From positions 2,914,001 to 2,978,000 of the forward strand of contig CATNEN010000002.1 in the NCBI GenBank assembly GCA_950097015.1: a DNA stretch of 64,000 nt. The letters are read 5' to 3'. This DNA comes from Macrostomum hystrix. Taxonomy: Eukaryota > Animalia > Platyhelminthes. This document shows, piece by piece, positions 1,952-62,338 of this stretch; the stretch's first letter is position 1; each line of letters begins with the position of its first letter. The translations under genes and the position numbers were made by a program. The notes under the pieces are model-generated. The model was not told the DNA's origin, made no database searches, and saw nothing but the letters and a program-made list of their open reading frames with translations.

Positions 1952-2140
1952 TTATTTTAGGGACTTCTATGCCCTGATTCGGAAAGAGGAGGTCACTGAA
2001 ACATTGTAGGTAGGCCATACATCGCTCTGATAAAATAGGATTTTTTGCTAGGATCTATTTGTAGCCTTTCAGGCTCTCGCCTAACTCTCTGCGGCCTTTG
2101 CCGCGGCTCTGGATCCCTAGCCTCACCTACTTGAGCAGCC

Positions 2141-29728: not shown

Positions 29729-30227
29729 CCCCAGCCCTCCCAGACACCTAGGACAGCATGACTCACAGATTGCCTGGAGGCTGCTCAGCAGTCTACAGCA
29801 CATCACTCTCCTCCAGCTAAAGGATGACGGTCAACACCGGCTGGCCGTCAGCCGCACGTAAATCCAAAACAGGTATGTCCTTTTTATTTACTTTTTAACA
29901 AAAAGAGAACACAAACACACAAGAACAAATAGGACACCACTAAACAACAAGAACAAGGCAAATCGTTAAACATCAGTCAGCGAATAATAATAGTCACTTA
30001 GTCCGTGAGCTGAATAACAGAGACCATTTGGTCAACAATGGCGCATGCTCCATTCCTCATGGCGCAAATGAATAGAAATTGTCAGGCAGTCAAAATACAA
30101 CAAAACAAAGGGGGCACAGGCTTGTGACATAGACAACGCTAGGCCACACAGGCCTACTTCAGTAAAGGACAGAAAATAGAAAAAGGGGGCATTCTCAAGA
30201 GTAGGAGCTTACTAACATATCCAGCCT

Positions 30228-31132
30228 TTAAAACCTCGCCATACGGACCAAGGCCTCGGGGTACCAAGCCCCTTCAACCAATTCAATGACGGCCCATATC
30301 GAGCCACCAGGTGATATGGTGTCCTGGCCGGGCCTCCGATCATCTGCTCCGCTCGAATTGCTGCCTCTTGGAGCATCTCTTGTCGTGTAGCCCGCTGCTC
30401 TTCCATAAACGCTCGCTGCGTGGCGGCCGGCCAACCCTCATCTAGCTGTCCGCGAGTGGCCCGAGCCAGGGACTCAGCCACCGCCTGAGTGGCCGTCTCC
30501 CGGTCTGGAGCCCGCAGGCCCCACTGGGCTCGCCTCTGGCGACGTTTCTGGGCGCCCCCTCGCCGTCGTCTCGGTCGCACTGGCTCCTCTGCTTCCTCGC
30601 TCGATGACGAGCTTTGCGGTAGAGGTATCTCCAACCTCGGCGGTGCCGCGGGACCTTCTGCTTGCACGTGCTCATCCGATCCCTGGTCCGAGTCAGGATC
30701 AGACACACCTTCATCGTCCGAAGGCATGCCGTCCTGCAACTCGGGCCATAGATCTTCATCCGGATCGGCTTGAGCCTCATCGGACCCGCTGCTGCTGCTA
30801 GTTACCACTGGCCTGCGTACCTGTACACAGGCGTCTGCGGTGTCAGGCACCACCTGTACCGCCATATGCCGTCTCTTCGGCACTGGCCCAGCTGCAACAC
30901 CAGCAGGGCGCTTGACTGCCTGCTGTAATCGAGGTAGTGACGGCATGAAATGCTGATGCCAATTTGGCGAGCGCTGACCCAAAGAGAAGGGCGCACTTTG
31001 GCCAAATTGACTCCTCAGAAGTTCAACCCGCCTACTCACCTCCACCGGCACACCGACTTTCCTGACCACCCCCATGAGACGTGGGCGCGTTGGTAGCCGC
31101 TCTTCGGGGATCCTATTTTCCTTATCGTCCAT
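30228..31132 (-). pseudogene. Gypsy ORF3, copy 2 (frameshift near 30290)
   Basis: MDDKENRIPEERLPTRPRLMG... The homologous C-terminus ELVEGAWYPEALVRMARF (copy 1: ELVEGWWLRESLMRMAPM) lies in the shifted frame. Confidence 0.8.
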
Positions 31133-31321
31133 GTTCTTTCTATGTTTTGTTTTAAGGCTTCTTCACGCCAAGTTTCGGGCAATAGGAATCGCTGAACATT
31201 GTAGGTGGGCCATATATTGCTCTGATGAAGTAGGATTTCCTGCTAGGATCCACCTGTAGCCTCGCGGGTTCTCGCCTAACTCTCTGCGGCCTTTGCCGCG
31301 GCTCTTGATCCCTAGCCTCAC

Positions 31322-33265
31322 CTACTTCCTGATTCTGAGCAGCCTCACCTTCTTCTTCGACCCTAACACCATCAGCAACTTACCCGTGCACAGAGGATGG
31401 GATAGGGGGCAGGGTTGGAGAGGGCAACGGACTGTCCGACGGCAGGACAACCGCATCACCTGACGCCTCCCCCGCCTCTCATGGCCGACCTCATGGCCGA
31501 CTAGCTCGTGGAGACTCGACCCGGAGCCAACTCGTGATCGCATGTGCCACCTACGAGCGCTCCACAGGCCGATCTCATCGTCGTAGTCGTCATTGCTGTC
31601 TTCTGGCTCGCCGGACGCGTCAGCTGTCAGGGAGTCACCCTTGGGTCTCCTTCCGAGCTTCCGCCGTGCCGTGCTCGCCACCTCCGTCTCACTGCACATC
31701 GAGGCCGGTACCGGGAGCAGGTTGCGCCGATGAACTACCAGCACCTGCTTCCTGGCCTTCTTGGTGTTGCCGTGTCGCCTGATCTTATAGACTGTCTCGC
31801 CCTTGTTCTCGAGCACTACGTAGACCGACTGTCGGGGCCGATGGAACTTGCTGATCTCGCCGGACTCGATCACCCGGTTGTTGAGTAAGACCAGCTGGCC
31901 CGGGCGGAGTAGTTTCGCCTGCGGTCTTTCCTGATAATGCTCCTCTCGCAGCACCTGATATCTTTCGAGCTTGTCCCGGGCACAGTCAACAGCCTGGTTG
32001 ATGCGCTCCTGGAACTGTCGGAGGTAGTCTGGAAGGTCTGCGTATTCAGCCAGTGCAGTCAACGTGTTGTCCACGGACAGCCGGTACTCCCGTCCGAAGA
32101 CCAGGAAATACGGCGTGTACCCGGTCACAGGATGGACACTGGTGCGCAACGCGATTAAGCACGCGGGCAGCATCAGGTCCCAATCCCTGTGATCCTTTTC
32201 CAACAAACACGTGAGCACTGACTTAATCTGGCGATTCAGATTCTCAACCTGGCCATTGCTGGCTGGGTTGTAGGGACACGTGTGCGTGTGACGGATTCCG
32301 TACAGCTTACAGAAGTCTTCAAACTCTGCGCTCATGAAGTTCGTCCCCTGGTCCGTGTGCAACCAAGCTGGCGCACCGTACTCGGGAATAAACCGATCTA
32401 GCAGCAGTTTGAGCACTGTCTTGGTCTTCTGGTTCCTCATCGGGTAGGCGAACGGGTACTTCGATGTTGCATCACACAGGGTTAGGATGTACCGATGTCC
32501 TCGGGCGCTTAGTTGTGACAAAGGCCCGATCACGTCGGCATGCACCCTTCCCAATACCTCACACACTGGAAAGTTCTGCGGTGGGACCACCTCCTTCCGC
32601 CTCGACTTACTCTCCAGGCATGTCCTGCAACGCGCAACGTACCCCGTTGCCTCCGTCCAGAGACCGGGTCTCCAGAACCTGTCTCTCACTCTCTGCACCG
32701 TCTTGGACTGGCCGAGATGACCCGCCAAATGTGAGTCATGCAAGGCCTCAAAGACGCGCGAGTCTAATGCTTTCGGTAGCACCGGTCGCGGCGGCCGGTT
32801 ATCATCAAAGTCAATGACGAGTAACCCGTCGCGCACCTCCAGCTCCTCAAATGCACCCAGCAGGTCTCTGACCTCCTTCGGCATCTGGAGTCGCTGATCG
32901 AACCTGGGCTTTTCCCTTCCTGAGAGCTTCAGTTCCGTCAGGTAACGGATTGCCGGGTCTTGGTGCTGAGCTTCTAGCAACTCGACCTGGCTAACCGGCA
33001 CCCTCAGGAACTCTGTCACCACTGCTCTTACCGGAGGCAGCTCTCCACTGTCTTCGTCCTCCTTGTCCTTGGACCCAGGAGCCCTGGCAGCAGGGGGTGT
33101 CCTTGACAGGCGAGACTGGTCGCAACGAGTCTGACAACTCCCCTCCACCTCTGCTCCCTGTCCCACGGAGAGACCAACAGTCGGCAGGCAGGACTGGCTG
33201 CAACGAGCGGGCACCTTTTCCTTTACCTCTGAGCCTTCCGCCACCACCTGAGTCTGCACCTGTGC
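31322..33265 (-). pseudogene. pol: Gypsy pol fragment with an uninterrupted integrase reading frame
   Basis: HHCC, VHADVIGP, TDQGTNF, QVENLN and a GPY/F-like region in one frame. The upstream pol is missing. Confidence 0.92.
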
Positions 33266-35532
33266 CGAACCAATCATGCATGTTTTATCTAAAACATTTG
33301 ATAGACTCAACAAAGGCCCACGGTAGGATGTAGTTAGTCCTTGTGCGAGTGAAAGCGTTAGAAAAGTAAATTAAATTTGCAAATTTTCAAATTTTTACAG
33401 GCATGTATTATCCTTGTATACACGGATCATGCATGTTTTTACAATGAAAAAAGGTCCTAGGTACTAGATCACTGCTAATGTTTAAAATCGAAAGAAAATA
33501 AACTTCCACTTCTTAGAGTTTGCAATAAGACGCTCATCGAAATTGTATTCGTTCTCAGCGCTAAGAATAGCTCGTCTGTCAGCACATGCAGCGTGACCGG
33601 ATACGTCAGACGTTATGCCATCTCCAGCAGCCTTATAAAGGCGCAAGAGCGACACTTGTCTGCCAAATTCATTAATAGGTGCTCCCGACCAAGAAGGTGA
33701 ATTCTGCTGGGCCATACTTTAACGATTCGCTTAAGAAACATGAAATCTGGGTTGGTAGACAATATTGGACTGACGTTCGTAATGAGAGATTTTATCTTGT
33801 CAAAGAAACCACAAGTGACTCGGAGTCTCACTCCTTTAAGTGAGTGAAACCAGGCCCAAACGGGGTAGCATCCATATCGGAATCCTTTCGGACTAGCATG
33901 CGATCGGCAAAAGTAATAAAGGCGACCTATGCACAATAAAAAACGTGTCAAGACATTGTATTCCCCATGCCTGCCTGGCACTTCAAAATCAAAATCTGTG
34001 TGGCACTCCAAATCTAAACTGTTGTATGGTCGTCTGAGGTCTTTAGCGCTGGTCCGCTCCTTTAGCGCTCCAGCACAATTTGAGTAAGACAGCCTAAGGC
34101 TTAGGAACGCATCGTCGTTGGGTCGCAATCCCGTCATTATTCCGTGTAGCTGTTGACGCCCATGAAGGCCGGAAACGTTAGTCAATGCTTGGCCCAGCTG
34201 TTACGCCGCTGGCAATCTACGAGCTGTAAGCTGTAAGCTCGTAAGCTGCGGCTTCATGCAAACTGCATTTTGACGCTTTCGGCAATTTCATTAAATTATT
34301 TGTCAATTTGCCTTAATCGTTTCCGGTGATCTTGTGTGCGTGCTTTCAGCTTGATTGGCTTGATTGGCTCGCTTCGCTCGCTCTTTCTCGCTATCTACTA
34401 TCTATTGCCAGGACCTGCACCGGAGCGGTTACGAAAATTAGATTTCTCGGTAGTTGCACGCACTCTTTTGCACTGCTTGAGTAGTCTGATTTTTGTACGG
34501 CATGGCTGGTTCCAGCAGGTAGTTCCTCTGGATAAAAGCGCTTACCGCGCCCATTGACTTTCCAGCTGCCTTAATCGTTTCCGGTGATCTTGTTTGCGTG
34601 CTTTCAGCTTGATTGGCTGCGGCAAGCTACTATCTACTACCATGTGGCGGATTCCACAATGGCGCTGCTTCCCCATCCCAGACGTACTCAATTATACGCG
34701 AGACAAGGTGATTTTCTGCTTGCCTCAGCCACAACTCTGACTCTCGCTGCACAAACCGGGGCGATGCAGCATGCTGGTGGGTAAATTGACGTTTCTTGAC
34801 GTTATAAATAGCCTCATCGCTGGACAACACCTCATCAGCATATCAGGGCGGCCAGTTCTTTTCTTCCTAAGAATATGTTCATAGGCTGTAGTGACAGTCG
34901 ACAATCGGTAGAGCACAAAGATTGTTTATACTTTTTTCTCTGACCAATGCCATCCATCTTGGGCTGCTTCATTAGAACATAACGATAGAAACGGAAGCAC
35001 TCGTGGGCTTTATCCGTGGTGTAGAACTTGCATCTAGGCATACTGCAGTGTGAATAACTGCAGCAAAAACATTGGCACAGAAGGAGTTGCAGCTGCAACT
35101 CTTTCATTGCACGCCTAAGTCATACTGACTGACTCAGACTGAGTGTCCAAATCACAACTCGTTGGATCTTTAGCAACAGAAGCCAGATTATCTTCATTCG
35201 CAAAGCGAGTGGCAATTAACGTACAAACATAGTTTGGCATTCACGTTTGACGGTTGGAACCATTCCACTTAACGGCCATCGACCAAAGCAAGTCCATAGG
35301 CTTGCCAGAATCACCAGTCGTGCGTAGCTAAAATGTCCGATTCAGATATTCTGCCAGCAAACTTGCAATACCCGGTATGTGGGGGTAGTTAAAGCGAAAA
35401 TATTTTTAACAGCTGCTGCAGCAGAAATAGCGGCCAATCCACTGCATAATTAAGAGTAATGCTAATCGCAAGCACGCTGTTTGGCTCCCGCAAAAAAGTG
35501 TTTTCTTGATTCAAAGCCCATTTATAGTGACG

Positions 35533-38817: not shown

Positions 38818-39120
38818 CTAGTCACTTAAAAAGTGCTCGAGGCGCTCCAATCTCGACATTTTTGAGGCCAGCTTCAGCTTCTTCATGCCAACGATGAAGG
38901 CCTGGCTTTTAGCCTCGAAGCCAATGCCATGATTTGCCGCGGGCCGCACGTTGTCGACCCAATCCCGGGTTGGAGGCTCGTCCAAAAACTGCACATGGAC
39001 GCGGTTGCCACGTGTAGCTAATTTGCCTCTTGGCGGCAAGCAGACAATTGCAGGCCACCACTGCTCGCCATCGCCTGGCCAAAACGCAACCACCAAGTCA
39101 CCCGGCTGCCAGGCGTTCTG
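38818..39120 (-). other. PWWP domain at the C-terminus of the recombinase gene
   Basis: PGDLV...WWP.IV...RVHVQF(L)DEPPTRDWV closely follows the MSH6-type PWWP pattern (PGDLVW...PWWPCLV...RVHVQFFDDSPTRGWV). Confidence 0.9.
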
Positions 39121-42100
39121 ATTGCTTGGCGCAGTGTTGGCGCTGCGCTCCGACAAGGCGGTGGTGGCGCTGCACTCCGACGCGGCGGCGGTGGTGGCGC
39201 TGCGCTCCGACGCGGCGGCGCAGCGGTTTGAAGCGGGGGCGGGGGCGGTGGCGCGGCGCTTCGATGCAGCGGCGGTGGTAGCGCTGCGCTCCGAGAAGCC
39301 GGCGGTGGTGGCGCTGCGCTTTGATGCGGGGGCGGTGGCGCTGCGCTTCGACGCGGCGGCGGTGGTGGCGCTGCGCTTCGACGCGGCGGCGGTGGTGGCG
39401 CTGCGCTCCGACGCGGCGGCGGTGGCGCCGCACTCCAACGCGGCGGCGGTGGTGGCGCTGCGCTCCGACGCGGCGGCGCAGCGGTTTGAAGCGGGGGCGG
39501 GGGCGGTGGCGCGGCGCTTCGATGCAGCGGCGGTGGTAGCGCTGCGCTCCGAGAAGCCGGCGGTGGTGGCGCTGCGCTTTGATGCGGGGGCGGTGGCGCT
39601 GCGCTTCGATGCGGAGGCGGCGCTGCGGTTTGAAGCAGGGGCGGTGGCGCAGCGCTTCGACGCGGCGGCGGTGGTGGCGCTGCGCTTCGACGCGGCGGCG
39701 GTGGTGGCGCTGCGCTTCGACGCGGCGGCGGTGGTGGCGCTGCGCTCCGACGCGGCGGCGGTCGTGGTGCTGCGCTCCGAGGCGGTGGTGGCGCTGCACT
39801 CCGACGCGGCGGCGGTGGTAGCGCTGCGCTCCGACGCGGCGGCGCAGCGGTTTGAAGCGGGGGCGGTGGCGCAGCACTCCAACGCGGCGGCGGTCGTGGC
39901 GCTGAGCTCCGACGCAGCGGCGGAAGCTGCGTGCCGCGAGCGCTGCGTCGATGCCCGGGGCTGAATCGGCTGACGTGTGGCCTAATTTTGGTAATGAAAA
40001 ATTTCCTGCGTTCATTAATTTTCGTTTGTTTAACTAGTCTTAGAAAATAAATAAGGAATTATCTATTAAGAAGCATGCAGCATAAAATACAGCATAAAGC
40101 AAAGAGAAATTCTCAGCATAGCTCACCCGTCCGGCGCTGTCCTTCATTATTTGCTGCAGAACAGCGCTACCGGCCTGCCGGTACCAGTCCGTGTGGACCT
40201 GGTAAAAATCCCGCGCCACCTGTGGCGTATGATATAGCCGGTCCGCCACAAGTTGCGGGTCCTCGCCCGCCAGTAGTGCCTGAAAAGGAAGATGGCGAAT
40301 TGAAGAAGATAAAACATATTTGTTTTTTACCTACTGAATTTAATAGTTTCAGGTATGATGGGAATCGAATAGACCAGTAGCAGATTTCGGGTGCACAAGG
40401 CGACTCAGAACTGCTACTTCCAAAACTCTCGCCCTCCCCAATTTCTGGTGATTAATAAAAAATGAAGCTGAATGGTCTATGTAACGTAGTCTATGTATGA
40501 AAAGCATCTTACGATAGCTACTCACTTTCGTTTCGACAAAGATTCGAAACTCGGTGCAAGTGACACTTGCCAGCAGCGGACTAAAACGCTCTCGGTGTTC
40601 TCGAAACATGCCTTCAAATCCGCCGTACTTAAACTTGATGAACGGCAGTTTGGCGTCGCCGTCGGTTGGGTTAGCGGCTTCGCGACGTCGCAGCAGCCGC
40701 AGCAGCAGGCTGCGGCACTCGGTCACGTTAACTTTGGACGCGCCGAAGTAGGCACTGGTCTTGTGTTTGGCTACCTGAATAATATCAGTCAAATATATAT
40801 TCAAACTAAGAACTGATGCAATGTTTCTAATGCATTCTAACATATCCCTGTAAACAATTATGCAATCGACCCATTTTCCTCCGCTTCAGTAAAACTCCGC
40901 AAATATGTTTGACAAGGGAAAATAAAACTTATAAGAACAAGCACAAATTATAGATGATTATTTCAAGCTGCTAATATAGAATACACCAACATAATCTTCT
41001 GACATCAACTCCCAGCCCTCTGACATAACTCTGAGCCCTCTTCCAGCCAAGCTCAGAGTTTGGAGTCAGTTGTTGACTAAGTCGCCTGCGGTAAAAGGCA
41101 AATTTAGCCGTGATATTGTAAAATACCGGAGCCCAAAAATATCTGCAGGGTGCAAAATTCGCCTAGATTTTTAGGTATAGCTTAAATTTCCTTATTGCCG
41201 AATTTTCGCAGAGTGCGAAGACAGATCATGCATATTTACTACGTTCCCTGTTTTCATCATAAGGAATTCACTACTACATCGAGTTTACAACTAATGCAAA
41301 CTGACAAAATAATTTCAAGAATATTAAAATGTGCGAAAGCATTTCCTGAAATATGCAACTTCTAGGAATTTAAAAATTATTACCTACTATCCTAATTTCA
41401 GACAATTTTTTTAACTCAATAAAGGGCTCACCCATAGCTCCTTCGATGGGTCATTGGCCCACTGCCGAACTTCTTGCAGAGTGGCGTTGCAAGCCACGTC
41501 TTGTCGGTTGGCGTTGCCGTCGCCGAAGCAAACAACCATTCCGAAAGCCAGCATCTCGTTGTCGGAAATTTTGTCAGCCTCGGCATCATCGGTGATGGTC
41601 TCGGCCAGCAGGTGAGCCTTCATGGCCATCAGTTCGGCCACCTGGTCGTCGCTGAGGAGGCGAGCATGCTTTTTGTCCTGGGATATAGGGTTAGGGTTAG
41701 GTTAGGTTAAACGAGCAAAGAGTTTTTTGCTTTATAAGTTTTCAGGTGAACTCCAATTTACCTCAAACATGTTAAAATAGGTATTGTTTGTGACTATAGC
41801 CTTATACCGGCTTTCTAGGACAGGACACTGGCCCGCTAAAATTAGTAACTCAAAACCAAGGCTAAAACTCCTGCTAAAATTCTTAGCATATGTACGACTT
41901 TTCCCCTAAAACTCTTGTATCACAACTAATAATGCAAAAATGCACATTTAAGAGCAGCATGGAGTGACAAACTAGAATATATCTAAACAAAATACACAGA
42001 TGCTATGAATTTTACTCACCTTTAGTGCGGCATTGTAGATTTTCTTTCGCTTGTTATAGTATTGTGTCCACTTTGGACAACAAGCACAAAAGCTTGTGAG

Positions 42101-45100
42101 GTGGTCGCGAAGACCATTGGCATTAATGCTGCTCAGCCTGTTCATGGTCAGGTAGTCGCCCAACTTTTGGAGACTGCCGACCATTTCCTTCAGGACCCCG
42201 AAGCTCACAGTGGTCAGGGTTTCTGAGATCTATATAAATTGTGGGGATATAAAGCTTCAGTATTAAACTGTGGCAGTAACAATTTATAGCTAGGGGTAGG
42301 CCCTATACCAAGCTTGCAGTAAAAATATGATGTCTTGGAATTACCAAAGACGCATAGAAAAACACTAGACTGATAAAAAGAATTTTAAATCGTTGTATAA
42401 TCAGTTAAATTATATAAAGTATGTCTAAGTTATTTAAATAAAATGGCAATGCAATGTAGGCCTATTTTGCAAACAGCTCAAGTGCATAATATATAACTCA
42501 CCAAATCTCGGTGTGACTCATGAATAACATCTTCAATTTCATTGGCTCCAACCAGGTCCACCAGTCGGTTCATGTATGAGCCAACCTTCCTGATAGTTGA
42601 TTCGGCCAGTCCACCACCCATGGCTCCTTTCAGAGAGTTCTGCATTTTGTTTTGTGTTTCTGTTCTTCAAGTTGAGCTTTAGGTAGGCATAGCTAGGCCT
42701 AACAGCTAAAGGAAGTATAAAACTTAGTAAAACAAAAACTGAAGCTCTATAAAATTTATATATGGGCTGAACAAGTCCTACTCCTTTACAATAAGACTAA
42801 GTCTAAATATAGCCAAAGATAGTTCATTTTTTTAGAATCATAGCACTTACCAGGTATGGAATCAGAGCAGGAATGAAACTGCTGGTTTCACTCGCAAGTT
42901 TCTTGTCTTCAGCAATCTGAGAACAGTGAGGTGGAAAAATATATAGCTATGCTGTTTTTCATATCAGCCAGTGGGTGTACTAGAGAAGTTCAGCATATAT
43001 ACTCATAATCATATACTAGATCAATTCGCTAGCAAGAGAATCACGGACACTGTCAAACAGGTCGGATGAAGCACTATCTAACAAGTTAGAAAGAACGCCT
43101 TCTAATAGATGAGAAGGAAAACTGTTGAGAGCTGAGACTCAATTAAGAATAGTATAAAAGAAAGAGCCAGCGCGTAAAACTATCGGCCCTTACCTGATGG
43201 GCTTCTTCGATCAACGCTTGCACGTTGACCGGCTTGTCTACAGGTCGAACAAGCTCGTCAGAATGCCAGCGTGCTTTGTGCTTCCGAAAATTGTCGGCAG
43301 TGCCCGGAATGATGAGTGAACAGAGCTGGCAAAAGTTGCCGTCTGGCACGGCTGCTGAAGCGCTGCCGTCTGGCACCGCTCCTGAAGCGCTGCCGTCTGG
43401 CAGAGCTGTTGCCGGTCTGTGCCAGTTCAAGGGGTCATTTAAAAATAAATCAGAAGTTCTTTGTTTTCACTCTTTGCAATAGGACAAGTAAGCCAGTTTC
43501 AGTCAACCAATTTTATAGAACATGGCAAAACTAACAAGGGTCAAGGGAACAAAAACTATACTATATATGGAAGCACATGTGTGATCGCGGAACAGGGGAG
43601 AGTGGAGACGTATGAGAGTGGAGACGGGGGAGAGTGGAGACGTGTGAGAGTGGAGACGGGAGAGAGTGGAGACTGGGGAGAGTGGAGACGGGGGAGAGTG
43701 GAGACGGGAGAGTGGAGACGGGGGAGAGTGGAGACGGGGGAGAGTGGATACAGGGGAGAGTGGAGACGGGGGAGATTGGAGACGGGAGAGTGGAGACAGG
43801 GCAGAGTGGAGACGGGGGAGAGTGGAGACGAGAGAGTGGAGACGGAGGAGAGTGGAGACGAGAGAGTGGAGACGGAGGAGAGTGGAGACGGGGGAGAGTG
43901 GAGACGGGGGAGAGTGGAGACTGGGGAGAGTGGAGACGGGGGAGAGTGGAGACGAGAGAGTGGAGACGGAGGAGAGTGGAGACGGGGGAGATTGGAGACG
44001 GGAGAGTGGAGACAGGGCAGAGTGGAGACGGGGGAGAGTGGAGACTGGGGAGAGTGGAGACGGGGGAGAGTGGAGACGGGAGAGTGGAGACAGGGCAGAG
44101 TGGAGACAGGGGAGAGTGGAGACGGGGGAGAGTGGAGACGGGGGAGAGTGGAGACGAGAGAGTGGAGACGGAGGAGAGTGGAGACGGGGGAGATTGGAGA
44201 CGGGAGAGTGGAGACAGGGCAGAGTGGAGACGGGGGAGTGGAGACAGGGCAGAGTGGATCTGATAAGCAATATGTAACGAAAATCATGCAAATAAAATAA
44301 AGACGTTCGAATTACCTCCTTCCGGCCAGCTTCAATTTGCGCTCCTGGTCCTTCACTTTGATAAAAATCCGCAGACACTTGTGCACCTTTGAAGTATCGT
44401 TCTGATACTTTTGGAGAAAGCTGTCGTATATATGACGGTGGCAGTCTCTTACATGCTGCGCGAATCTGGAGTTGCGCACAATGCAGTTGGGTCGATATGG
44501 ACACGTGTAGCAACGCCCGGCTCTCTTGCTCTCTTCTTCGTCGTTGGCTCTGGCTCGCCGGGTTTTCGAGCTGCTTGCTGGCGGGGCTGACGTGCTGCTG
44601 GCTGCAGCTTGCGTATTTGGCGAGATGCTTGCTGGTGGGACTAATGTGCTACTGGCTGTGGCCTGCGTGGTCGGCGAGCAGATGGCTGGCCAGGCTGCAG
44701 CACTGCTATGACTAGCACGGTAGCTGCCGTTGACCTCGTAGCCGTAGCCATTGCCGCTGTTCTCGCCGTTTGCGCCGTTGCCGCCGTTGACAGCATAGCT
44801 GTAGCTGCCGTTGCCGCTGTAGCCGCTGTAGCCGCTGTAGCCGCCGTAGCCGCTGTAGCTGCCGTTGCCGCTGTAGCTGCCGTAGCCGCTGTAGCTGCCG
44901 TAGCCGCTGTAGCTGCCGTTGCCGCTGTAGCTGCCGTTGCCGCTGTAGCTGCCGTTGCCGCTGTAGCTGCCGTTGCCGCTGTAGCTGCCGTTGCCGCTGT
45001 AGCTGCCGTTGCCGCTGTAGCTGCCGTTGCCGCTGTAGCTGCCGTAGCCGCTGTAACCACCGTTGCCGCTGTAGCTGCCGTTGCCGCTGTAGCTGCCGTT

Positions 45101-45550
45101 GCCGCTGTAGCTGCCGTTGCCACTGTAGCCGTTGTTGCCGCTGTAGCCGCTGTAACCGGTAGTCACACTGCCGTTGGTGCCGTTGCAGCCGCTGCCGTTG
45201 TTCACGCCGTTAGCGACGTTGCAGTCGTTGTCGCCGTTGTCCGACACGCCGCTGCTGGCGCTTGATGGCGATCCGGCAGCGCCGCTGCTGGCGCTTGATG
45301 GCGATCCGGCAGCGCCGCTGCTGGCGCTTGATGGCGATCCGGCAGCGCCGCTGCTGGCGCTTGATGGCGATCCGGCAGCGCCGCTGCTGGCGCTTGATGG
45401 CGATCCGGCAGCGCCGCAGAGCTGGGTGCGAACTGCCTCAGCAATCGAAATCGGTGTATCCAAAGTCGCTGAGGCAAGGCTCTCCATGAGTGGGCCTGGC
45501 TTGTCAAACTCAAATTGTAAGCACTTGCTTAAACCTAATTCGAAGTTCAT
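38818..45550 (-). CDS. 9-exon gene, ~1227 aa: low-complexity repeats, 2 C2H2-like fingers, tyrosine recombinase (core-binding and catalytic), repeats, PWWP (Crypton-like)
   Basis: Exons 45550-44316, 43416-43194, 42916-42851, 42639-42502, 42229-42020, 41677-41432, 40774-40526, 40279-40127 and 39981-38818. Every intron is GT..AG and the phases match; total 3684 nt = 1228 codons with no internal stop. YR motifs GNANRQD, VAKHKT, TEFR, ADRLYHT...DFYQ. PWWP: PGDLVVAFWPGDGEQWWPAIV...VHVQFLDEPPTRDWV. Confidence 0.85.
39127..39930. repeat. GC-rich ~30-bp coding minisatellite (ASERSATTAA) with a 258-bp higher-order duplication
   Basis: GGCGGTGGTGGCGCTGCGCT units; blocks repeat at 39219 and 39477. Confidence 0.9.
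43594..44258. repeat. 13/15-bp G-rich minisatellite (GGGGAGAGTGGAGAC and variants) in intron 1 of the recombinase gene
   Basis: Direct reading; lies between donor 44315 and acceptor 43417. Confidence 0.92.
44805..45415. repeat. Coding repeats in exon 1: 18-bp (SGNGSY) array and 30-bp (GAAGSPSSAS) x5
   Basis: GCCGCTGTAGCTGCCGTT units at ~44810-45130; GGCGCTTGATGGCGATCCGGCAGCGCCGCT units at ~45258-45415. Confidence 0.92.
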
Positions 45551-46128: not shown

Positions 46129-46667
46129 AAGCTAAGTTCTATTCACTGTTATGCAGTTATAGCACTGTGCTGTGTTAGAGAGTGAAAAAGCTAAGTTCTA
46201 TTTGCTGTTATGCAGTTATAGCACTGTGCTGTGTTAGAGAGTGAAAAAGCTAAGTTCTATTCGCTGTTATGCAGTTATAGCACTGTGCTGTGTTAGAGAG
46301 TGAAAAAGCTAAGTTCTATTCGCTGTTATGCAGTTATAGCACTGTGCTGTGTTAGAGAGTGAAAAAGCTAAGTTCTATTCGCTGTTATGCAGTTATAGCA
46401 CTGTGCTGTGTTAGAGAGTGAAAAAGCTAAGTTCTATTCGCTGTTATGCAGTTATAGCACTGTGCTGTGTTAGAGAGTGAAAAAGCTAAGTTCTATTCGC
46501 TGTTATGCAGTTATAGCACTGTGCTGTGTTAGAGAGTGAAAAAGCTAAGTTCTATTCGCTGTTATGCAGTTATAGCACTGTGCTGTGTTAGAGAGTGAAA
46601 AAGCTAAGTTCTATTCGCTGTTATGCAGTTATAGCACTGTGCTGTGTTAGAGAGTGAAAAAGCTAAG
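46129..46667. repeat. 59-bp tandem array, 9 nearly identical copies plus 8 bp, between divergently oriented genes
   Basis: AAGCTAAGTTCTATTCGCTGTTATGCAGTTATAGCACTGTGCTGTGTTAGAGAGTGAAA; only units 1-2 vary. Confidence 0.96.
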
Positions 46668-47386: not shown

Positions 47387-47700
47387 ATGGCCAGCTTGTC
47401 GTGCCCGCTATGTACAAGTACTCGTATTGTTCATAGCCTCAAGGACAACGTTGAAAGACATATTAGGAATATGCATGGCCAAGATCCGCAGCCCGTCATC
47501 GAGTACGCGAAGTGGTCTAAAAAACCAGATATTCTTCTTTGTCGACTCTGTATATATTTCGAGAAGAATCTTAATAAGCATTACAAGCACAAGCATGCGA
47601 GCGAATTTGCAAAGTTTAAAGCTGCGTTTTCTGGCACCAAGGCAACAAAAGCAAGCCGACAGTCTGCTGTTTCGTATTTATCAGCACTTCGCACTTCGCA
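47387..47700 (+). pseudogene. Truncated zinc-finger paralog (2 C2H2-like fingers), cut off by the 124/126-bp array
   Basis: CPLC...RHIRNMH and CRLC...KHYKHKH, then VSYLSALRTS, which resembles the start of the core-binding region (IPYLNSLKG in the spliced gene) just before the array begins. Confidence 0.55.
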
Positions 47701-49034
47701 TGCGTCATCTGTGCAGCTGTGTATATCTGCCCCATCTATAGTGTCATTTCTCAGTCTTCTATTTGATTCTGTATATAGAAGGCGCCGCTTCAAGACAGTT
47801 AGAAACTGCTGAAATAGCAGGCCGCATGCGTCATCTGTGCAGCTGTGTATATCTGCCCCATCTATAGTGTCATTTCTCAGTCTTCTATTTGATTCTGTAT
47901 ATAGAAGGCGCCGCTTCAAGACAGTTAGAAACTGCTGAAATAGCAGGCCGCATGCGTCATCTGTGCAGCTGTGTATATCTGCCCCATCTAGTGTCATTTC
48001 TGAGTCTTCTATTTGATTCTGTATATAGAAGGCGCCGCTTCAAGTCAGTTAGAAACTGCTGAAATAGCAGGCCGCATGCGTCATCTGTGCAGCTGTGTAT
48101 ATCTGCCCCATCTAGTGTCATTTCTGAGTCTTCTATTTGATTCTGTATATAGAAGGCGCTGCTTCAAGACAGTTAGAAACTGCTGAAATAGCAGGCCGCA
48201 TGCGTCATCTGTGCAGCTGTGTATATCTGCCCCATCTAGTGTCATTTCTTAGTCTTCTATTTGATTCTGTATATAGAAGGCGCCGCTTCAAGACAGTTAG
48301 AAACTGCTGAAATAGCAGGCCGCATGCGTCATCTGTGCAGCTGTGTATATCTGCCCCATCTATAGTGTCATTTCTGAGTCTTCTATTTGATTCTGTATAT
48401 AGAAGGCGCCGCTTCAAGACAGTTAGAAACTGCTGAAATAGCAGGCCGCATGCGTCATCTGTGCAGCTGTGTATATCTGCCCCATCTATAGTGTCATTTC
48501 TGAGTCTTCTATTTGATTCTGTATATAGAAGGCGCCGCTTCAAGACAGTTAGAAACTGCTGAAATAGCAGGCCGCATGCGTCATCTGTGCAGCTGTGTAT
48601 ATCTGCCCCATCTAGTGTCATTTCTGAGTCTTCTATTTGATTCTGTATATAGAAGGCGCCGCTTCAAGTCAGTTAGAAACTGCTGAAATAGCAGGCCGCA
48701 TGCGTCATCTGTGCAGCTGTGTATATCTGCCCCATCTAGTGTCATTTCTGAGTCTTCTATTTGATTCTGTATATAGAAGGCGCTGCTTCAAGACAGTTAG
48801 AAACTGCTGAAATAGCAGGCCGCATGCGTCATCTGTGCAGCTGTGTATATCTGCCCCATCTAGTGTCATTTCTGAGTCTTCTATTTGATTCTGTATATAG
48901 AAGGCGCCGCTTCAAGACAGTTAGAAACTGCTGAAATAGCAGGCCGCATGCGTCATCTGTGCAGCTGTGTATATCTGCCCCATCTAGTGTCATTTCTGAG
49001 TCTTCTATTTGATTCTGTATATAGAAGGCGCCGC
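47698..49034 (+). repeat. 124/126-bp tandem array, ~10.7 copies
   Basis: Unit starts at 47698, 47824, 47950, 48074, 48198, 48322, 48448, 48574, 48698, 48822 and 48946; an AT indel accounts for 124 vs 126. Confidence 0.96.
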
Positions 49035-49685
49035 TATGATGCTTATGAGGATCGAATTGTTAGTGATAAAGTTTACGATTTGCAATATTTGTTTGGTTGT
49101 ATGGCGCAATTTTTTTGGTGACGAAACTATTTTTTCTTTTATTTGATATCCTGGTGCCATGGATACCATGGGTCCTATGGAGCCATGATGCACGGTTGTT
49201 TTGTGCGGTGTGAGATTTGCGTTTTTCTATCTCTCGACAGTTTTTTGAGTTAAGTAATAGATAATATATACTTCGCGGCTTTTTAAAAAGTTGTTCACGA
49301 AGCACGTATTATCAATATGGTCGAGTTTGCGCAACTTGAACACTCAAATAGACTCGAGTGTTTAGAGGTGGTGAATGATAGACGGTGACACCTATGTGAG
49401 GAGCATTTTTGTTGCACTATATTTATGATTGCGCAATTTTAAATCGGAGGCAAAGCAGTGCTTCCAATTCCAATTCTAATTTCCAATTTGAAATTTGAAT
49501 GAGAATTGTTATGCTTTTGCAAAGACTGTCGAAAGCCAAAACCAATGATATGCTATCTATATTTTTATTGGCCGATGACTGACTTCATCCCCACCTTTGA
49601 GCACAGGCATCGTATTTAAGTCATGACTCTAGATACATTTTTAATCATATAATCCTATTTTAAGTATATTTTTCGGTTTCAAAAA

Positions 49686-52316
49686 ATGGAAAAATCCTTC
49701 ATTGAAAAACTTCTTCAATGGGAGAAATGGACCTCCAGCAAAGTCCAGCAGCCCGCCACCGTCCAGCAGCCCGCCACCGTCCAGCAGCCCGCCACCGTCC
49801 AGCAGCCCGCCACCGTCCAACAGCCCGCCACCGTCCAACAGCCCGCCACCGTCCAACAGCCCGCTACCGTCCAGCAGCCCGCCACCGTCCAACAGCTCGC
49901 CACCGTCCAACAGCCCGCCACCGTCCAACAGCCTGCCGCCGTTGAGCCGAAGAAGATGCGGGCCGGGCAAGAGTACATCTGCCCTTTCGGCAATTGCTTG
50001 CCAATAAAAAAGTCCCGCTTCAGCGAGCACCTAAAAAGATCCCACGTGGCTGTGCTAGAGAGCACAAAGCAGCAGCTAGCAGCAACCGGAATTTCATCTG
50101 AAGCTGCGCTTCAAAAAGAGGCCTTAAAAGCTGTGCGTGCGGCAGTTAAGCTGCACACCCATCAGCTGACTGCCAGCCCGATGCCGGAGATGGCGCAGCA
50201 GTGCCACATCTGCGGCGAGTGGCGGAATAATCCGAATCTATTATCCAGCCACTTGCGCAACAGCCATCCTGTCGCTGTCAGAGCGGCAAAACAACAGAAG
50301 CTGGCTGACGCCAGGTTAAAAGTGCCGGCCAGAGCGGTGGTGGCCGAGCATCCTTCAGCCGCTGATGTTGAGGCCCTGTGCGTCTTCCTAGCGAGCTCGC
50401 TCGGCGGACGCAGAAAACCGGCTACGGTCCGGGAAATCCGGTGCTATCTGAAACGGCTGATGCAGCGCCTCGACATAGTCAGCTTTGAGCAGCTGATCGG
50501 CGAGGATCGGCGTGGCGCGGTAAGCGCCTACTTGGACAGCCTGACATACTCCATGCTGAAGCAGACAGTTTCCGCCCTTGAGAAGGTCGGAAACTTTCTG
50601 ATTTCGGCGCGCTACCAGCGCATCTTCGATGGTGGGCTGCAGCAGCAGCTCACCTCGTACCGGCAGGCCACCAAAAATTGGACGGCGAGCTCGAGCTCGT
50701 CGGCTGCTGCTAGCGCCGACCTGCCTGCTGCTGGCGCCGACCTGCCTGCTGCTGGCGCCGACCTGCCTGCTGCTGGCGCCGACATGCCTACTGCTGGCGC
50801 CGACCTGTCTGCTGCTGGCGCCGACCTGCCTGCTACTGGCGCCGACATGCCTACTGCTGGCGACGACCTGCCTGCTGCTGGCGCCGACATGCCTACTGCT
50901 GGCGCCGACCTGCCTGCCTGTAGCGCCGACCTGCCTGCCGCCGCTACTACGCTTCTAGAATTTTCATTTAGCTCGGACAACCATAACGGATTATTAGATG
51001 AATTATACGAGAATATTTACGGCACTGACGATGCTAGAGCTACAGATGCCTCCGCTTCCGCCGTCCTACCTGGCGCCGACCTGCCTGCTGCTGGCGCCGA
51101 CCTGCCTGCTGCTGGCGCCGACCTGCCTGCTGCTGGCGCCGAAATGCCTACTGCTGGCGCCGACCTTTCTGCTGCTGGCGCCGACATGCCTGCTGCTGGC
51201 GCCGACATGCCTACTGCTGGTGCCGACCTGCCTGCTGCTAGCGCCGACCTGCCTGCTACTGGCGCCGACCTGTCTGCTGCTGGCGCCGACCTGCCTGCTG
51301 CTGGCGCCGACATGCCTACTGCTGGCGCCGACCTGTCTGCTGCTGGCGCCGACCTGCCTGCTACTGGCGCCGACATGCCTACTGCTGGCGCCGACATGCC
51401 TACTGCTGGCGCCGACCTGCCTGCTGCTGGCGCCGACATGCCTACTGCTGGCGCCGACCTGCCTGCCTGTAGCGCCGACCTGCCTGCCGCCGCTACTACG
51501 CTTCTAGAATTTTCATTTAGCTCGGACAACCATAACGGATTATTAGATGAATTATACGAGAATATTTACGGCACTGACGATGCTAGAGCTACAGATGCCT
51601 CCGCTTCCGCCGTCCTACCTGGCGCCGACCTGCCTGCTGCTGGCGCCGACCTGCCTGCTGCTGGCGCCGACCTGCCTGCTGCTGGCGCCGAAATGCCTAC
51701 TGCTGGCGCCGACCTTTCTGCTGCTGGCGCCGACATGCCTGCTGCTGGCGCCGACATGCCTACTGCTGGCGCCGACCTGCCTGCTGCTAGCGCCGACCTG
51801 CCTGCTACTGGCGCCGACCTGTCTGCTGCTGGCGCCGACCTGTCTGCTGCTGGCGCCGACCTGTCTGCTGCTGGCGCCGACCTGCCTGCTGCTGGCGCTG
51901 AAGTCGACTCCGCCAAGCCGCCGGGTAACCGCTTGGCTCGAAAGCGACGTCCAGAGTTCAGCGCCAGCACCAGCGCCGCTAGTCCAGCGAGCAAGCGGCC
52001 AGAAGTTGAGCGGCAAGAAGTTCAGCCAGGCTGCCTTGTTCTCGGCTACTGGCCAACGGACGGCGAAAACTGGTGGCCGGCAATGGTTTGCCTACCCAGC
52101 CACGGTTCGAGCTGCACAAAAGGCATTTGCACTCTAAAAATTCATGTGCAATTTTTCGATAAACCGCCGTCGAGTGCCTGGCTCCACCGGTGGCAGCTTG
52201 TAAGCGGAGCAGAGCCGACTCCAAACAATGCCTCCAAAAAGCTCCGCCAAGCCTACGAACAAATGGCGAAGGCCAGCAAACTCGAAATTGAGTCTCGCTT
52301 GGACAGATTTTTATAA
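49686..52316 (+). CDS. Intronless 876-aa paralog: VQQPAT repeats, 2 C2H2 fingers, YR core-binding-like domain, AGADLP repeats, PWWP; no catalytic domain
   Basis: AGQEYICPFGNC...SRFSEHLKRSH matches AGRCYTCPYRPNC...SRFAQHVRDCH. FLASSLGGRRKPATVREIRCYLKRL matches YLNSLKGAMGGGLAESTIRKVGSYMNRL. PGCLVLGYWPTDGENWWPAMV...IHVQFFDKPPSSAWL is a PWWP. Confidence 0.85.
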   Translation: MEKSFIEKLLQWEKWTSSKVQQPATVQQPATVQQPATVQQPATVQQPATVQQPATVQQPATVQQPATVQQLATVQQPATVQQPAAVEPKKMRAGQEYICPFGNCLPIKKSRFSEHLKRSHVAVLESTKQQLAATGISSEAALQKEALKAVRAAVKLHTHQLTASPMPEMAQQCHICGEWRNNPNLLSSHLRNSHPVAVRAAKQQKLADARLKVPARAVVAEHPSAADVEALCVFLASSLGGRRKPATVREIRCYLKRLMQRLDIVSFEQLIGEDRRGAVSAYLDSLTYSMLKQTVSALEKVGNFLISARYQRIFDGGLQQQLTSYRQATKNWTASSSSSAAASADLPAAGADLPAAGADLPAAGADMPTAGADLSAAGADLPATGADMPTAGDDLPAAGADMPTAGADLPACSADLPAAATTLLEFSFSSDNHNGLLDELYENIYGTDDARATDASASAVLPGADLPAAGADLPAAGADLPAAGAEMPTAGADLSAAGADMPAAGADMPTAGADLPAASADLPATGADLSAAGADLPAAGADMPTAGADLSAAGADLPATGADMPTAGADMPTAGADLPAAGADMPTAGADLPACSADLPAAATTLLEFSFSSDNHNGLLDELYENIYGTDDARATDASASAVLPGADLPAAGADLPAAGADLPAAGAEMPTAGADLSAAGADMPAAGADMPTAGADLPAASADLPATGADLSAAGADLSAAGADLSAAGADLPAAGAEVDSAKPPGNRLARKRRPEFSASTSAASPASKRPEVERQEVQPGCLVLGYWPTDGENWWPAMVCLPSHGSSCTKGICTLKIHVQFFDKPPSSAWLHRWQLVSGAEPTPNNASKKLRQAYEQMAKASKLEIESRLDRFL
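50710..51900. repeat. 18-bp coding repeats (CTGGCGCCGACCTGCCTG) with a 549-bp internal duplication
   Basis: The unique block TTLLEFSFSSDNHNGLLDELYENIYGTDD occurs twice, 549 bp apart. Confidence 0.92.
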
Positions 52317-52482
52317 AGAATTAACTGTTTGCTCTTATCTATTATTTGCACGAAACTTTTTAATCTTTAACTTTATACTTGTAATTGCTCCGTAATATAC
52401 TTGTAATAACTGCGTAAAAATGTATAAAACTTGTACCATAATTCAAAAACACATTTCGCTGCGCTATTTCAATGCTAGACCA

Positions 52483-54152
52483 AAGACTGAGAAATGACAC
52501 TAGATGGGGCAGATATACACAGCTGCACAGATGACGCATGCGGCCTGCTATTTCAGCAGTTTCTAACTGTCTTGAAGCGGCGCCTTCTATATACAGAATC
52601 AAATAGAAGACTCAGAAATGACACTAGATGGGGCAGATATACACAGCTGCACAGATGACGCATGCGGCCTGCTATTTCAGCAGTTTCTAACTGTCTTGAA
52701 GCAGCGCCTTCTATATACAGAATCAAATAGAAGACTAAGAAATGACACTAGATGGGGCAGATATACACAGCTGCACAGATGACGCATGCGGCCTGCTATT
52801 TCAGCAGTTTCTAACTGTCTTGAAGCGGCGCCTTCTATATACAGAATCAAATAGAAGACTCAGAAATGACACTAGATGGGGCAGATATACACAGCTGCAC
52901 AGATGACGCATGCGGCCTGCTATTTCAGCAGTTTCTAACTGTCTTGAAGCGGCGCCTTCTATATACAGAATCAAATAGAAGACTCAGAAATGACACTAGA
53001 TGGGGCAGATATACACAGCTGCACAGATGACGCATGCGGCCTGCTATTTCAGCAGTTTCTAACTGTCTTGAAGCGGCGCCTTCTATATACAGAATCAAAT
53101 AGAAGACTCAGAAATGACACTAGATGGGGCAGATATACACAGCTGCACAGATGACGCATGCGGCCTGCTATTTCAGCAGTTTCTAACTGTCTTGAAGCGG
53201 CGCCTTCTATATACAGAATCAAATAGAAGACTCAGAAATGACACTATAGATGGGACAGATATACACAGCTGCACAGATGACGCATGCGGCCTGCTATTTC
53301 AGCAGTTTCTAACTGTCTTGAAGCGGCGCCTTCTATATACAGAATCAAATAGAAGACTAAGAAATGACACTAGATGGGGCAGATATACACAGCTGCACAG
53401 ATGACGCATGCGGCCTGCTATTTCAGCAGTTTCTAACTGTCTTGAAGCGGCGCCTTCTATATACAGAATCAAATAGAAGACTCAGAAATGACACTAGATG
53501 GGGCAGATATACACAGCTGCACAGATGACGCATGCGGCCTGCTATTTCAGCAGTTTCTAACTGTCTTGAAGCGGCGCCTTCTATATACAGAATCAAATAG
53601 AAGACTCAGAAATGACACTAGATGGGGCAGATATACACAGCTGCACAGATGACGCATGCGGCCTGCTATTTCAGCAGTTTCTAACTGTCTTGAAGCAGCG
53701 CCTTCTATATACAGAATCAAATAGAAGACTAAGAAATGACACTAGATGGGGCAGATATACACAGCTGCACAGATGACGCATGCGGCCTGCTATTTCAGCA
53801 GTTTCTAACTGTCTTGAAGCGGCGCCTTCTATATACAGAATCAAATAGAAGACTCAGAAATGACACTAGATGGGGCAGATATACACAGCTGCACAGATGA
53901 CGCATGCGGCCTGCTATTTCAGCAGTTTCTAACTGTCTTGAAGCAGCGCCTTCTATATACAGAATCAAATAGAAGACTAAGAAATGACACTAGATGGGGC
54001 AGATATACACAGCTGCACAGATGACGCATGCGGCCTGCTATTTCAGCAGTTTCTAACTGTCTTGAAGCAGCGCCTTCTATATACAGAATCAAATAGAAGA
54101 CTAAGAAATGACACTAGATGGGGCAGATATACACAGCTGCACAGATGACGCA
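52483..54152 (-). repeat. Reverse-complement array of the same 124/126-bp unit, ~13.5 copies
   Basis: GAAATGACACTAGATGGGGCAGATATACACAGCTGCACAGATGACGCATGCGGCC is the reverse complement of the 47698 unit. Confidence 0.96.
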
Positions 54153-59866: not shown

Positions 59867-61480
59867 TTGAAATTGGAGGACCCACAGCAATCTCAGATAC
59901 CGAATCAGTCCATAGACCCTGATTCTCTAGTTGAGGACAATCCAAACGGCACAAACCCCTCCGTCTTGTCCACACCTCACAATAGAACTGTTACAGGCGC
60001 ATCAACTTCCGTCACTTTTGGAGACTTACCGTCATACAGAGATAGTACATTACAAGATCAGCAACAAGAGTCTGTCGGTGGTGACGACGACATATCTGAA
60101 GAATCAGAGACTTCAGACCAGACGACAGTTAAAATACTTTTCTGTACAAAACAACACGCTCTATTACGATGATGACAATGGAAACATGCGACTCGTTATA
60201 CCACACTGTTATCGAGATGCCTTGTTATCCTCGTGTCATACTTCGGCTTTTGGCGGCCATTTAGGTCTTCAAAAGACTCTGCAGAGACTGACACGCTTCT
60301 ACTACTGGCCCACTCTCTACAAAGACGTACAAACTTTCGTTAATGGGTGTACAATATGTCACCGCGCCAAATCTGGCCCACGACTGCACCCAGAAAGAAA
60401 AGCCGTCAAGTTCAATGAAGTCTTCTCACACCTGGCTATCGACATAGTTGGACCTGTACCTCCTGCAAGCCGTGATAGAGACATTTTCAAGTACATCCTG
60501 ACCGCTCAGTGTGGCGTCAGCAAGTTTCTCTTCACGATCCCACTATGCGATACTACGACAGCTACAATCTGCTCCAATCTATTTCGATATGTGTTTTCCG
60601 TTGCCGGACTACCAGCCCATATCATCTCAGACAATGGTCCGCAGTTCATATCACAAGATTATCGCGACTTCATGAACACGCTAGGCATACAACTCATCTA
60701 CACCTCATACTATCAGCCATCTAGCAACTTGTTGAAAGAGCACACAAAACGCTCAAACAAACACTGACAGCATTTGTGCACGACAAACCCGAACTCTGGC
60801 TTGAATACCTTCCATCAGTTACGTTGGCATTAAATACGGCCGTACATGCTCATATGGGTGAATCTCCCTTCTATCTATTCTATGCTCGCGATTTCCTGCC
60901 ACCTAATGCTAGAATCATAGAGCATCAAACTACGGCCTACATAGATGTGATCAAGCCCGTCAACATTACGAGTTCTGCCATTTTACTCGCACGTGATATC
61001 GCCATTCAACATCTACACTCAGCAGCTGATGCTCGTACTACACGACATAATGAGCAAATGTCTCAATCCACTCCGTTAAAAGTCGGCGCTCGCTGCTATC
61101 TAGATGTTTCCGCCACTAAGGCAACTAAATTCTCTAATCCCTACCGTGGTCCTATGAGAATACTCAAATGGCTATCACCGCAGAATGTGCTCATCAATGA
61201 TGTGAACAAGCCTCATGAACAACCTATCGTGGTACATGCTTCAAAACTCAAACCTTCGCCGAACGATACGCCTCCTGAAGCCATGATACCTGAGTTCACA
61301 CATTCAACGGCTCAAACACACACTAATCATCGAGCGAATCTTACTCGCTCAATTGCGTTGCAAACATCTCAGACGGACATCAAGCAGTCGGAGAAGGGTG
61401 CAGACCGTAATGCAACACCTACAAACAACTTGAAAGAAGAGCCTAGATACCAACTACGCTCAAGAGCCGTACCACGATGA
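59867..61480 (+). pseudogene. pol: Gypsy integrase (frameshifts near 60075 and 60740)
   Basis: CHTSAFGGHLG...RFYYWP...CTIC, LAIDIVGP, ISDNGPQF, YQPSSN/LVERAHKTL split by a frameshift, KFSNPYRGP, and terminal RYQLRSR. Confidence 0.93.
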
Positions 61481-62338
61481 GCAATAATTCGCGCTATGAA
61501 CTCGATAAGATCGACATTCTTTAAATTCGTGCATGTTACCTTCTACGTTACCCATATTTTTATTTTGTTATAATTTCTTTCCCTTCTTCACCCTTGATGT
61601 TTGATATAGAATACCATCATTCCTCCACACATCTAATATCTATCTTCCATAGTGCACATTATATGCCTTGATATCACTTTTGTCAATCCAAAACACAAAA
61701 AACTACAAAAAATACCACTTTTCAATACACATTATTTAGTTTCTCGCTTACCCTATTTCTTTTCATAATTATAGATAATTTTATATATTACCTAAACTCG
61801 ACATACGGCTTCACCTATATTTATTCGCTACCTTTATTACCTCCTCATACACATTTTACTCAGCTACGACTATTTCGAAGACAGACCTCTTCTCCTTACA
61901 CTTGTTCTAAACAATCTTTCCAACATCTTTTCTTTCTGTCCTTTATTCCACATTCGCCTCGTTGAGGCTCGACCGTGTGACTAATCTGATGACCTGGCGA
62001 TTGACTAACCTGATGACCTGGCGATTGGCTAACCCGATGACCTGGCGATTGGCTAACCTGATGACCCGAAGTCTCACCGAATACCGCTGAAGCCGACACC
62101 GTGGCCTACACTGACACGCTGTCATTCATCCAGCTATCGACTCCATCCCATACTGTCTTAGCGTTTACACAAACAGCGGCACTAGCGTCTCTCCCATCAA
62201 TCAAGTCTCTCTGCCCGACTCCTGCAATTGCGATCTCTCGTGTCCGACACGAAGCAGAACCAGAAGCCTCATTTCAACGTGGTGGCCCTGAGAAGGGCCG
62301 TTTTAACGTTCACAATGGGCTAACATCATACTGTGCAG

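Follow-up and report, generated by a model that had tools for sequence, protein, structure and literature searches.

The window analysed here, 64,000 nucleotides of the flatworm Macrostomum hystrix (assembly GCA_950097015.1, contig CATNEN010000002.1, positions 2,914,001 to 2,978,000), contains at positions 49686–52316 of its plus strand a long open reading frame (ORF), which we call deltaYR. The ORF is probably what remains of the coding part of a non-autonomous element, an internally deleted member of a transposon-like flatworm family (Macrostomum-type) whose full members combine a tyrosine recombinase with two zinc fingers and a C-terminal PWWP domain. According to this explanation, a single genomic deletion would have taken the end of the first exon together with all catalytic exons and introns, and would have joined codon ~336 (in KNWTASS), with the frame preserved, to the linker, rich in repeats, that the last exon encodes; this shortened form would then have multiplied to four copies, each placed between inverted arrays of a 124-bp unit. 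The protein, if made, is predicted to bind DNA through its fingers and core-binding domain and chromatin through its PWWP domain, and would not cut or rejoin DNA.

The frame runs uninterrupted for 876 amino acids, in agreement with an earlier note made from the sequence alone, which had called the 2.6-kb frame intact, and all its features are read on the plus strand. Close to its start, an 18-bp unit encoding VQQPAT is repeated in tandem and in frame 11 times (49743–49942). Two zinc fingers follow: finger 1 (49974–50045; C-x4-C...H-x4-H), whose counterpart in the relative L031 matches the Pfam U11-48K CHHC finger, and the C2H2-like finger 2 (50199–50267; C-x2-C-x12-H-x4-H), which matches zf-C2H2_4 with an E value of 0.076; on the N-terminus, Pfam gave weak finger matches and nothing else. 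Next come the core-binding (N-terminal SAM-like) domain of a tyrosine recombinase (50346–50615, amino acids 221–310), identified by its fold, and an array of ~56 units of a 21-bp AGADLP repeat (50704–51898), interrupted by two acidic blocks (50952–51023 and 51501–51572). The protein ends in an MSH6/NSD2-like PWWP domain (52059–52274, amino acids 792–863), in which the Y, WWP and FF positions are recognisable; it matches PF00855 with 26.8 bits against a Pfam cut-off of 25.6, and the PWWP domains closest to it are those of MSH6 (E 1.2e-5) and NSD2 (E 7e-4).

The recombinase ancestry of the middle part is evident from structure. A model of amino acids 87–339, computed with an alignment of eight paralogues (mean predicted local distance difference test score 78), places its residues 135–224, that is, amino acids 221–310 of the ORF, on the core-binding domain of XerD with a Z score of 9.8 and a root-mean-square deviation of 2.3 Å over 80 residues; the Brujita integrase (Z 9.5), XerA (9.3), IntI (8.1) and the core-binding domain of lambda Int (8.1) match the same segment, and N-terminal domains of recombinases make up about 15 of the top 20 rows of the fold search. 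What the complete enzyme looks like can be seen in L031, a full-length unspliced relative with a frame of 1436 amino acids: modelled with 24 sequences, it is a two-domain tyrosine recombinase with the catalytic fold present, and the top 32 rows of its PDB fold search are all recombinases or type IB topoisomerases (Z 11.0 to the Brujita integrase and an archaeal Xer, and 10.3 over 172 residues to variola topoisomerase IB). MrpR, YopR and SroF occur among the fold matches. The catalytic motifs GxANR, HK(T/S), (F/V)R..ET and NH(S/T)x7Y are kept in the alignment of the relatives, and the catalytic residues also in the exons of a spliced gene that neighbours the ORF in the window. A Pfam search up to an E value of 1 found neither DUF3504 nor Phage_integrase in L031 or in the catalytic exon of the relative L023, and because Pfam is blind to the catalytic domain, the recombinase identity rests on fold and motifs; Pfam likewise found no reverse transcriptase in the 1436-amino-acid frame of L031.

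The ORF itself has none of the catalytic residues Arg-Lys-(His)-Arg-His/Trp-Tyr. A search with a relative's catalytic exon recovered the exons of the neighbouring gene and nine other loci, and found no catalytic domain within 49686–52316 or in the three sister copies of the ORF. The earlier note had been right that the catalytic domain is missing and that what has been kept are modules for binding DNA and chromatin, and deltaYR is a catalytic-less paralogue within the family.

How the domain was lost becomes apparent from the relatives. Amino acids 90–345, searched over the entire 220-Mb assembly, gave 24 matches; beyond the sister copies, the nearest is L032 (C38:15902778), 90% identical, and further relatives are a fragment at C1:17806199 and a four-copy subfamily, L023–L026, 69% identical. 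The relatives at 69–90% identity share the continuous, unspliced N-terminus of the ORF. In L023 and L032, the first exon passes through NWTASS into MGPKAKYYADL... and ends in ...KDR, after which come an intron and the catalytic exon; the last exon of the relatives carries an acidic block, GADLP repeats and the PWWP domain. In the window, the sequence instead reads KNWTASS|SSSAAASADLPAAG (50673–50735), skipping MGPKAKYYADL... and the catalytic exons that follow it. The junction peptide can be read directly in the copy on C1, and the sister copies have the same catalytic-less gene layout as the window copy. From this comparison it follows that the ORF arose by one in-frame genomic deletion reaching from within the first exon to the linker of the last, and since the deletion begins inside an exon of the relatives, after NWTASS, it is a deletion of DNA and not a splice product.

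The acidic block and repeats of the ORF align with the last exon of the relatives (39% over 54 amino acids, E 1e-5), and by this homology to the linker of catalytic relatives they are that native linker in an expanded form. Repeats and a duplicated acidic block are indeed present, as the earlier note had described, but the idea that they replace the catalytic domain fails: a substitute for the enzyme is rejected because catalytic relatives carry the homologous linker as well. Homology to L032 (C38:15.90 Mb) defines a recombinase-element-derived unit at 49481–52473 of the plus strand, with blocks 49481–50692 and 51288–52473 aligning; the native sequence retained beside the ORF thus amounts to ~205 bp on the upstream side and 157 bp on the downstream side. 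The ratio of nonsynonymous to synonymous substitution rates (dN/dS) is 0.24–0.44 against L032 and 0.09–0.17 against L023, the latter with dS saturated, and both reflect mostly the history before the deletion.

A few traits of these relatives deserve mention. The members of the 69% subfamily lie at C2:9092056, C12:1384059, C14:1404620 and C39:6636318; their catalytic exons are 100% identical, a tandem repeat fills their intron, and the first exon is preceded by a long satellite in the same reading frame. The subfamily looks very recently active. Directly past the 3' end of L032 (L032:8415–8480), a sequence resembling a tRNA T-arm is found on the other strand (GGTTCGATTCC); ARAGORN calls no tRNA there, and a tRNA-gene target beside L032 was rejected.

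The genome contains exactly four copies of deltaYR at 98–100% nucleotide identity, namely the window copy (C2) and those at C1:5186004, C3:244994 and C11:928630, and only half of them are open. The frame is 876 amino acids long in the window and ~605 on C1; the C3 copy is broken by the stop C815* in the PWWP domain and by a 1-bp deletion near the end, and the C11 copy by a 10-bp deletion at 50193 in window numbering. A 549-bp tandem duplication that preserves the frame (50704–51349 repeated as 51253–51898, 96.9% identical) is private to the window copy and gave rise to its second acidic block; the C1 frame contains no acidic block, the comparison of repeat regions taking in the window and C1 copies. 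Between copies, the unique coding sequence differs by 0.5–1.5% and the flanking non-coding sequence by 1.0–2.4%.

An intact frame of 2.6 kb might seem to argue for function. In-frame tandem repeats whose unit length is divisible by three make up 53% of it, however, and across these repeats the other frames and the opposite strand are likewise open, so that the length of the ORF makes selection look better supported than it is; what chiefly accounts for the open frame is that the copies have diverged by 1–2% only and that half of it consists of such repeats. The proposal that the ORF has been kept by selection finds no support in a four-copy repeat of which two copies are broken and half the frame is tandem repeat, and we infer that deltaYR is non-autonomous and effectively neutral. 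A domesticated transposon gene fits poorly: there are four copies, two of them broken, and no sign of recruitment by the host.

Several observations speak against this picture of a neutral, transposed remnant. Roughly 9 of the 18 substitution events among the copies are synonymous where ~25% would be expected (binomial p≈0.02), and along the branch between the window copy and the other three, 4 of 6 changes are synonymous (p≈0.04); among the private changes, 5 of 11 are synonymous (p≈0.11), accompanied by two frameshifts and one stop, all of these counts being tiny and the 25% expectation approximate. This gives a weak hint that the deleted protein may have been somewhat constrained while the lineage spread and then have decayed neutrally, a pattern usual for transposon genes. 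The loci on C1, C3 and C11 have at least 13–15 kb of context in common, and part of the amplification may therefore be segmental duplication and not transposition. Further, the search turned up no intact, autonomous member of its own subfamily able to mobilise deltaYR; L032 contains stops and lacks the second catalytic arginine. No run on record as RNA holds the ORF sequence. Contigs from five small, low-depth runs do cover it, and since the C11 deletion allele is among them, these are most likely DNA.

The same evidence bears on whether the truncated protein acts as a repressor, competing with its own or related full-length recombinases for DNA sites, or joining them as an inactive synaptic subunit, and so damping transposition. 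KP, an internally deleted P element, damps P-element transposition in this manner and provides a precedent. An in-frame deletion that retains the whole DNA-binding N-terminus and the PWWP domain, native sequence kept on both sides of the gene (205 bp upstream, 157 bp downstream), a deleted form that outnumbers any intact parent, and the slight excess of synonymous changes would all suit such a role. We nevertheless consider it unlikely: half of the copies have already been broken, the linker varies freely in length (876 against ~605 amino acids in C1, where the acidic block is absent), and in the part that binds DNA, identity to the nearest intact recombinases is only 69%, which makes a shared site specificity doubtful.

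The deletion derivative is embedded in an unusual cassette. To its left, ~11 units of the 124-bp repeat occupy 47697–49035 on the plus strand, followed by a 445-bp spacer (49036–49480, plus strand) that connects the array to the recombinase-derived unit and is present in all four copies; to its right, ~13.5 units lie inverted at 52483–54152, on the minus strand. Inverted arrays flank every copy, with unit counts of 11/14, 19/12, 3/2 and 6/27, and elsewhere in the genome the unit is found only in a partial duplicate on C29 and as one diverged partial unit near L032. A generic foldback satellite was rejected, the 124-bp unit being private to these loci. The window locus consists of the 6.5-kb core only, whereas on C1, C3 and C11 the inverted structure extends outward through other satellites. 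The cassette contains no transposase gene, and the full-length 69% subfamily is without inverted repeats. At the cassette ends in the window (47697 and 54152), no target-site duplication was found, nor was an empty site: the left flank has its match at C1:12423287, the right one at C29:1605512.

Two side observations concern the edges and the origin of the cassette. Immediately to the left, at 47387–47696 of the plus strand, lies the start of another two-zinc-finger ORF (MASLSCPLCT...), cut off precisely at the start of the left array; the flank recurs at C1:12423287 with 97% identity, homology ending at the array edge, and the segment is probably the N-terminus of another family member disrupted by the cassette. 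Some 9 kb upstream of L032, at C38:15892676–15893832, a 77% copy of the spacer accompanies the one partial 124-bp unit, and both may be long-standing components of the element and not host satellite.

The cassette has turned around. Comparison of C1:5178000–5197999 with C3:237000–256999 reveals both outer flanks in common and the gene-bearing inner segment in opposite orientation: the cassette has flipped between its inverted arms. On C29 (1605512–1608665), the right flank of the window, ~20 units of the 124-bp repeat and the first 101 bp of the 5' spacer are joined at 100% identity; this is the flipped isomer of the window locus, either an allele or haplotig, or an assembly artefact. The outer ends of both window arrays (47697–47704 and 54144–54152) fall within an 8-bp palindrome, CGCATGCG, that is present once per 124-bp unit and is possibly a defined breakpoint or recombination site.

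These rearrangements raise the idea of a helper acting in cis: the protein would bind the arrays of its own cassette and either recruit a full-length recombinase supplied in trans or tether the cassette to marked chromatin, promoting its inversion, copying or retention. That the unit surrounds only the deltaYR gene, that the inner segment is inverted between C1 and C3 relative to common flanks, that a flipped isomer identical to the window locus exists on C29 and that both outer array ends lie in the palindrome can be cited for it. Ordinary homologous recombination between inverted repeats of 1.3–1.7 kb explains the flipping without any protein, however, and the C29 piece may be artefactual, and we hold a helper role to be quite improbable, more so than repression. 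Even when repression and help in cis are pooled, the chance that either describes deltaYR is low. There is about a one-in-several prospect, comparable to that of repression by itself, that deltaYR is a transposon-encoded regulator of a type not described for tyrosine-recombinase elements, one that represses active recombinases at the recombination sites or chromatin targets of the family, or steers the flipping and copying of its own cassette.

The window offers one more candidate partner, the spliced recombinase gene at 38818–45550 on the minus strand, which is divergent from the ORF and starts 4.1 kb from it. Searched against the window with tblastn, the ORF protein gave four collinear but weak matches on this gene, at 27–39% identity: finger 1 (44689–44408; 27%, E 6e-5), two segments of the core-binding domain (42633–42487, 31%, E 0.02; 42229–42065, 33%, E 3e-5) and the PWWP tail (38827–39100; 39% over 103 amino acids, E 3e-20). 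The common domain order asserted in the earlier note is thus real, if faint, and the ORF does read on unbroken where the neighbour splits between 42487 and 42229. Descent from the neighbour by retroposition or intron loss, on the other hand, had to be abandoned. The two are ~30% identical, and the closest relatives of the ORF, at 69–90%, already have an unspliced N-terminus; as this is so across the whole subfamily, there is no need to invoke a loss of introns from the neighbour.

The proposal that the two genes form a two-component recombinase system, or that the ORF is a domesticated host regulator, is largely refuted, and we give it very little credence. Divergent genes 4.1 kb apart that share domain order and a PWWP domain could be taken for a pair, and an N-terminal recombinase domain has been domesticated on its own before, in the ALOG proteins (PMC3537659). 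Yet no recombinase gene or catalytic domain occurs within ~8–10 kb of the copies on C1, C3 and C11, so these three stand unpaired and a conserved gene pair is rejected; the ~30% identity in the DNA-binding part makes a shared site specificity unlikely; the ORF is multicopy with broken members; and a word search of public proteins found no homologue of comparable length. A satellite of 59-bp units, a truncated two-finger ORF and the left 124-bp array moreover lie between the two genes. The ORF is neither a derivative nor a dedicated partner of the neighbouring spliced gene, and their adjacency looks like a coincidence in a region dense with mobile elements.

The region is a cluster of such elements. 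The satellite in the interval from the neighbour to the cassette (46129–46667) consists of nine 59-bp units at 99% identity. Several retrotransposon frames (integrase, reverse transcriptase, gag-like) lie within 1–34000 and 59900–61500 of the window, which also holds near-duplicate gene pairs (1037–4365 against 30212–33313) and large transposase-like ORFs at 18829–20505 and 26610–28435.

The zinc-finger/recombinase/PWWP family is both young and numerous in this genome, where at least 55 matches were counted, with many open frames of 1100–1500 amino acids. Its known distribution is narrow: in public data (1.84 billion representatives) we obtained 26 hits, about half of them to low-complexity sequence only, leaving ~14 real relatives, and the named hits of the family are hypothetical proteins of Macrostomum lignano. 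A word search of public proteins with amino acids 87–345 came back blank, with no homologue of 482–1533 amino acids, and among the papers searched, none joins a Crypton or tyrosine recombinase with PWWP, nor with Macrostomum.

Altogether, the analysis corrects what the sequence by itself had suggested: the ORF is no twin of its neighbour, its repeats are no substitute for an enzyme, and its long frame is weak evidence of function. In effect, nature has made a "domain-deletion mutant" within a rare family of animal recombinases that carry a chromatin reader, and with it a ready tool for learning what fingers, core-binding domain and PWWP domain do when catalysis is absent. The mutant also bears on the question of whether tyrosine-recombinase transposons generate self-repressors of the KP kind, and the private inverted arrays with their flipped isomers provide a secondary lead on cassette rearrangement.

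Among known systems, deltaYR resembles KP and other internally deleted P elements of Drosophila in that an in-frame internal deletion kept the DNA-binding N-terminus and abolished catalysis, and in that the deleted form was amplified and can outnumber its parent. The enzymes differ, P transposase being an RNase-H-like/THAP enzyme and the parent of deltaYR a tyrosine recombinase, and so does the kind of evidence: repression by KP has been shown experimentally, whereas deltaYR is known from sequence and half of its copies are broken. With the DUF3504 genes and with the phage proteins MrpR, YopR and SroF it shares a recombinase origin, the loss of catalysis and DNA binding, the last of these predicted for deltaYR; those proteins keep the catalytic fold with mutated residues, whereas in deltaYR the whole catalytic domain is gone. 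The ALOG proteins, conserved host transcription regulators that stem from DIRS1-like retroposons (Iyer & Aravind 2012, PMC3537659), are unlike deltaYR, which is a young multicopy repeat. A gene placed between long inverted arms of tandem sub-repeats is reminiscent of the foldback elements FB/NOF and Rehavkus, but the arms of deltaYR are built of a private 124-bp unit and not of the 170-bp satellite of those elements, there is no Mutator-like transposase, and the window copy has no target-site duplication. Animal Cryptons have been described as possessing no reverse transcriptase, no terminal repeats and no recognisable domain beyond the recombinase (PMC3212892), in contrast to the zinc fingers and PWWP domain of the present family and to the long open frame of deltaYR between long inverted arrays; this comparison is by features only, Pfam giving no DUF3504 or Phage_integrase match. 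Non-autonomous derivatives of Cryptons are nevertheless on record, CryptonI-1N1_RPro and CryptonA-1N1/2_OL (Kojima & Jurka 2011, PMC3212892), and like them, deltaYR would be a deletion derivative of a eukaryotic tyrosine-recombinase DNA transposon that depends on its parent.

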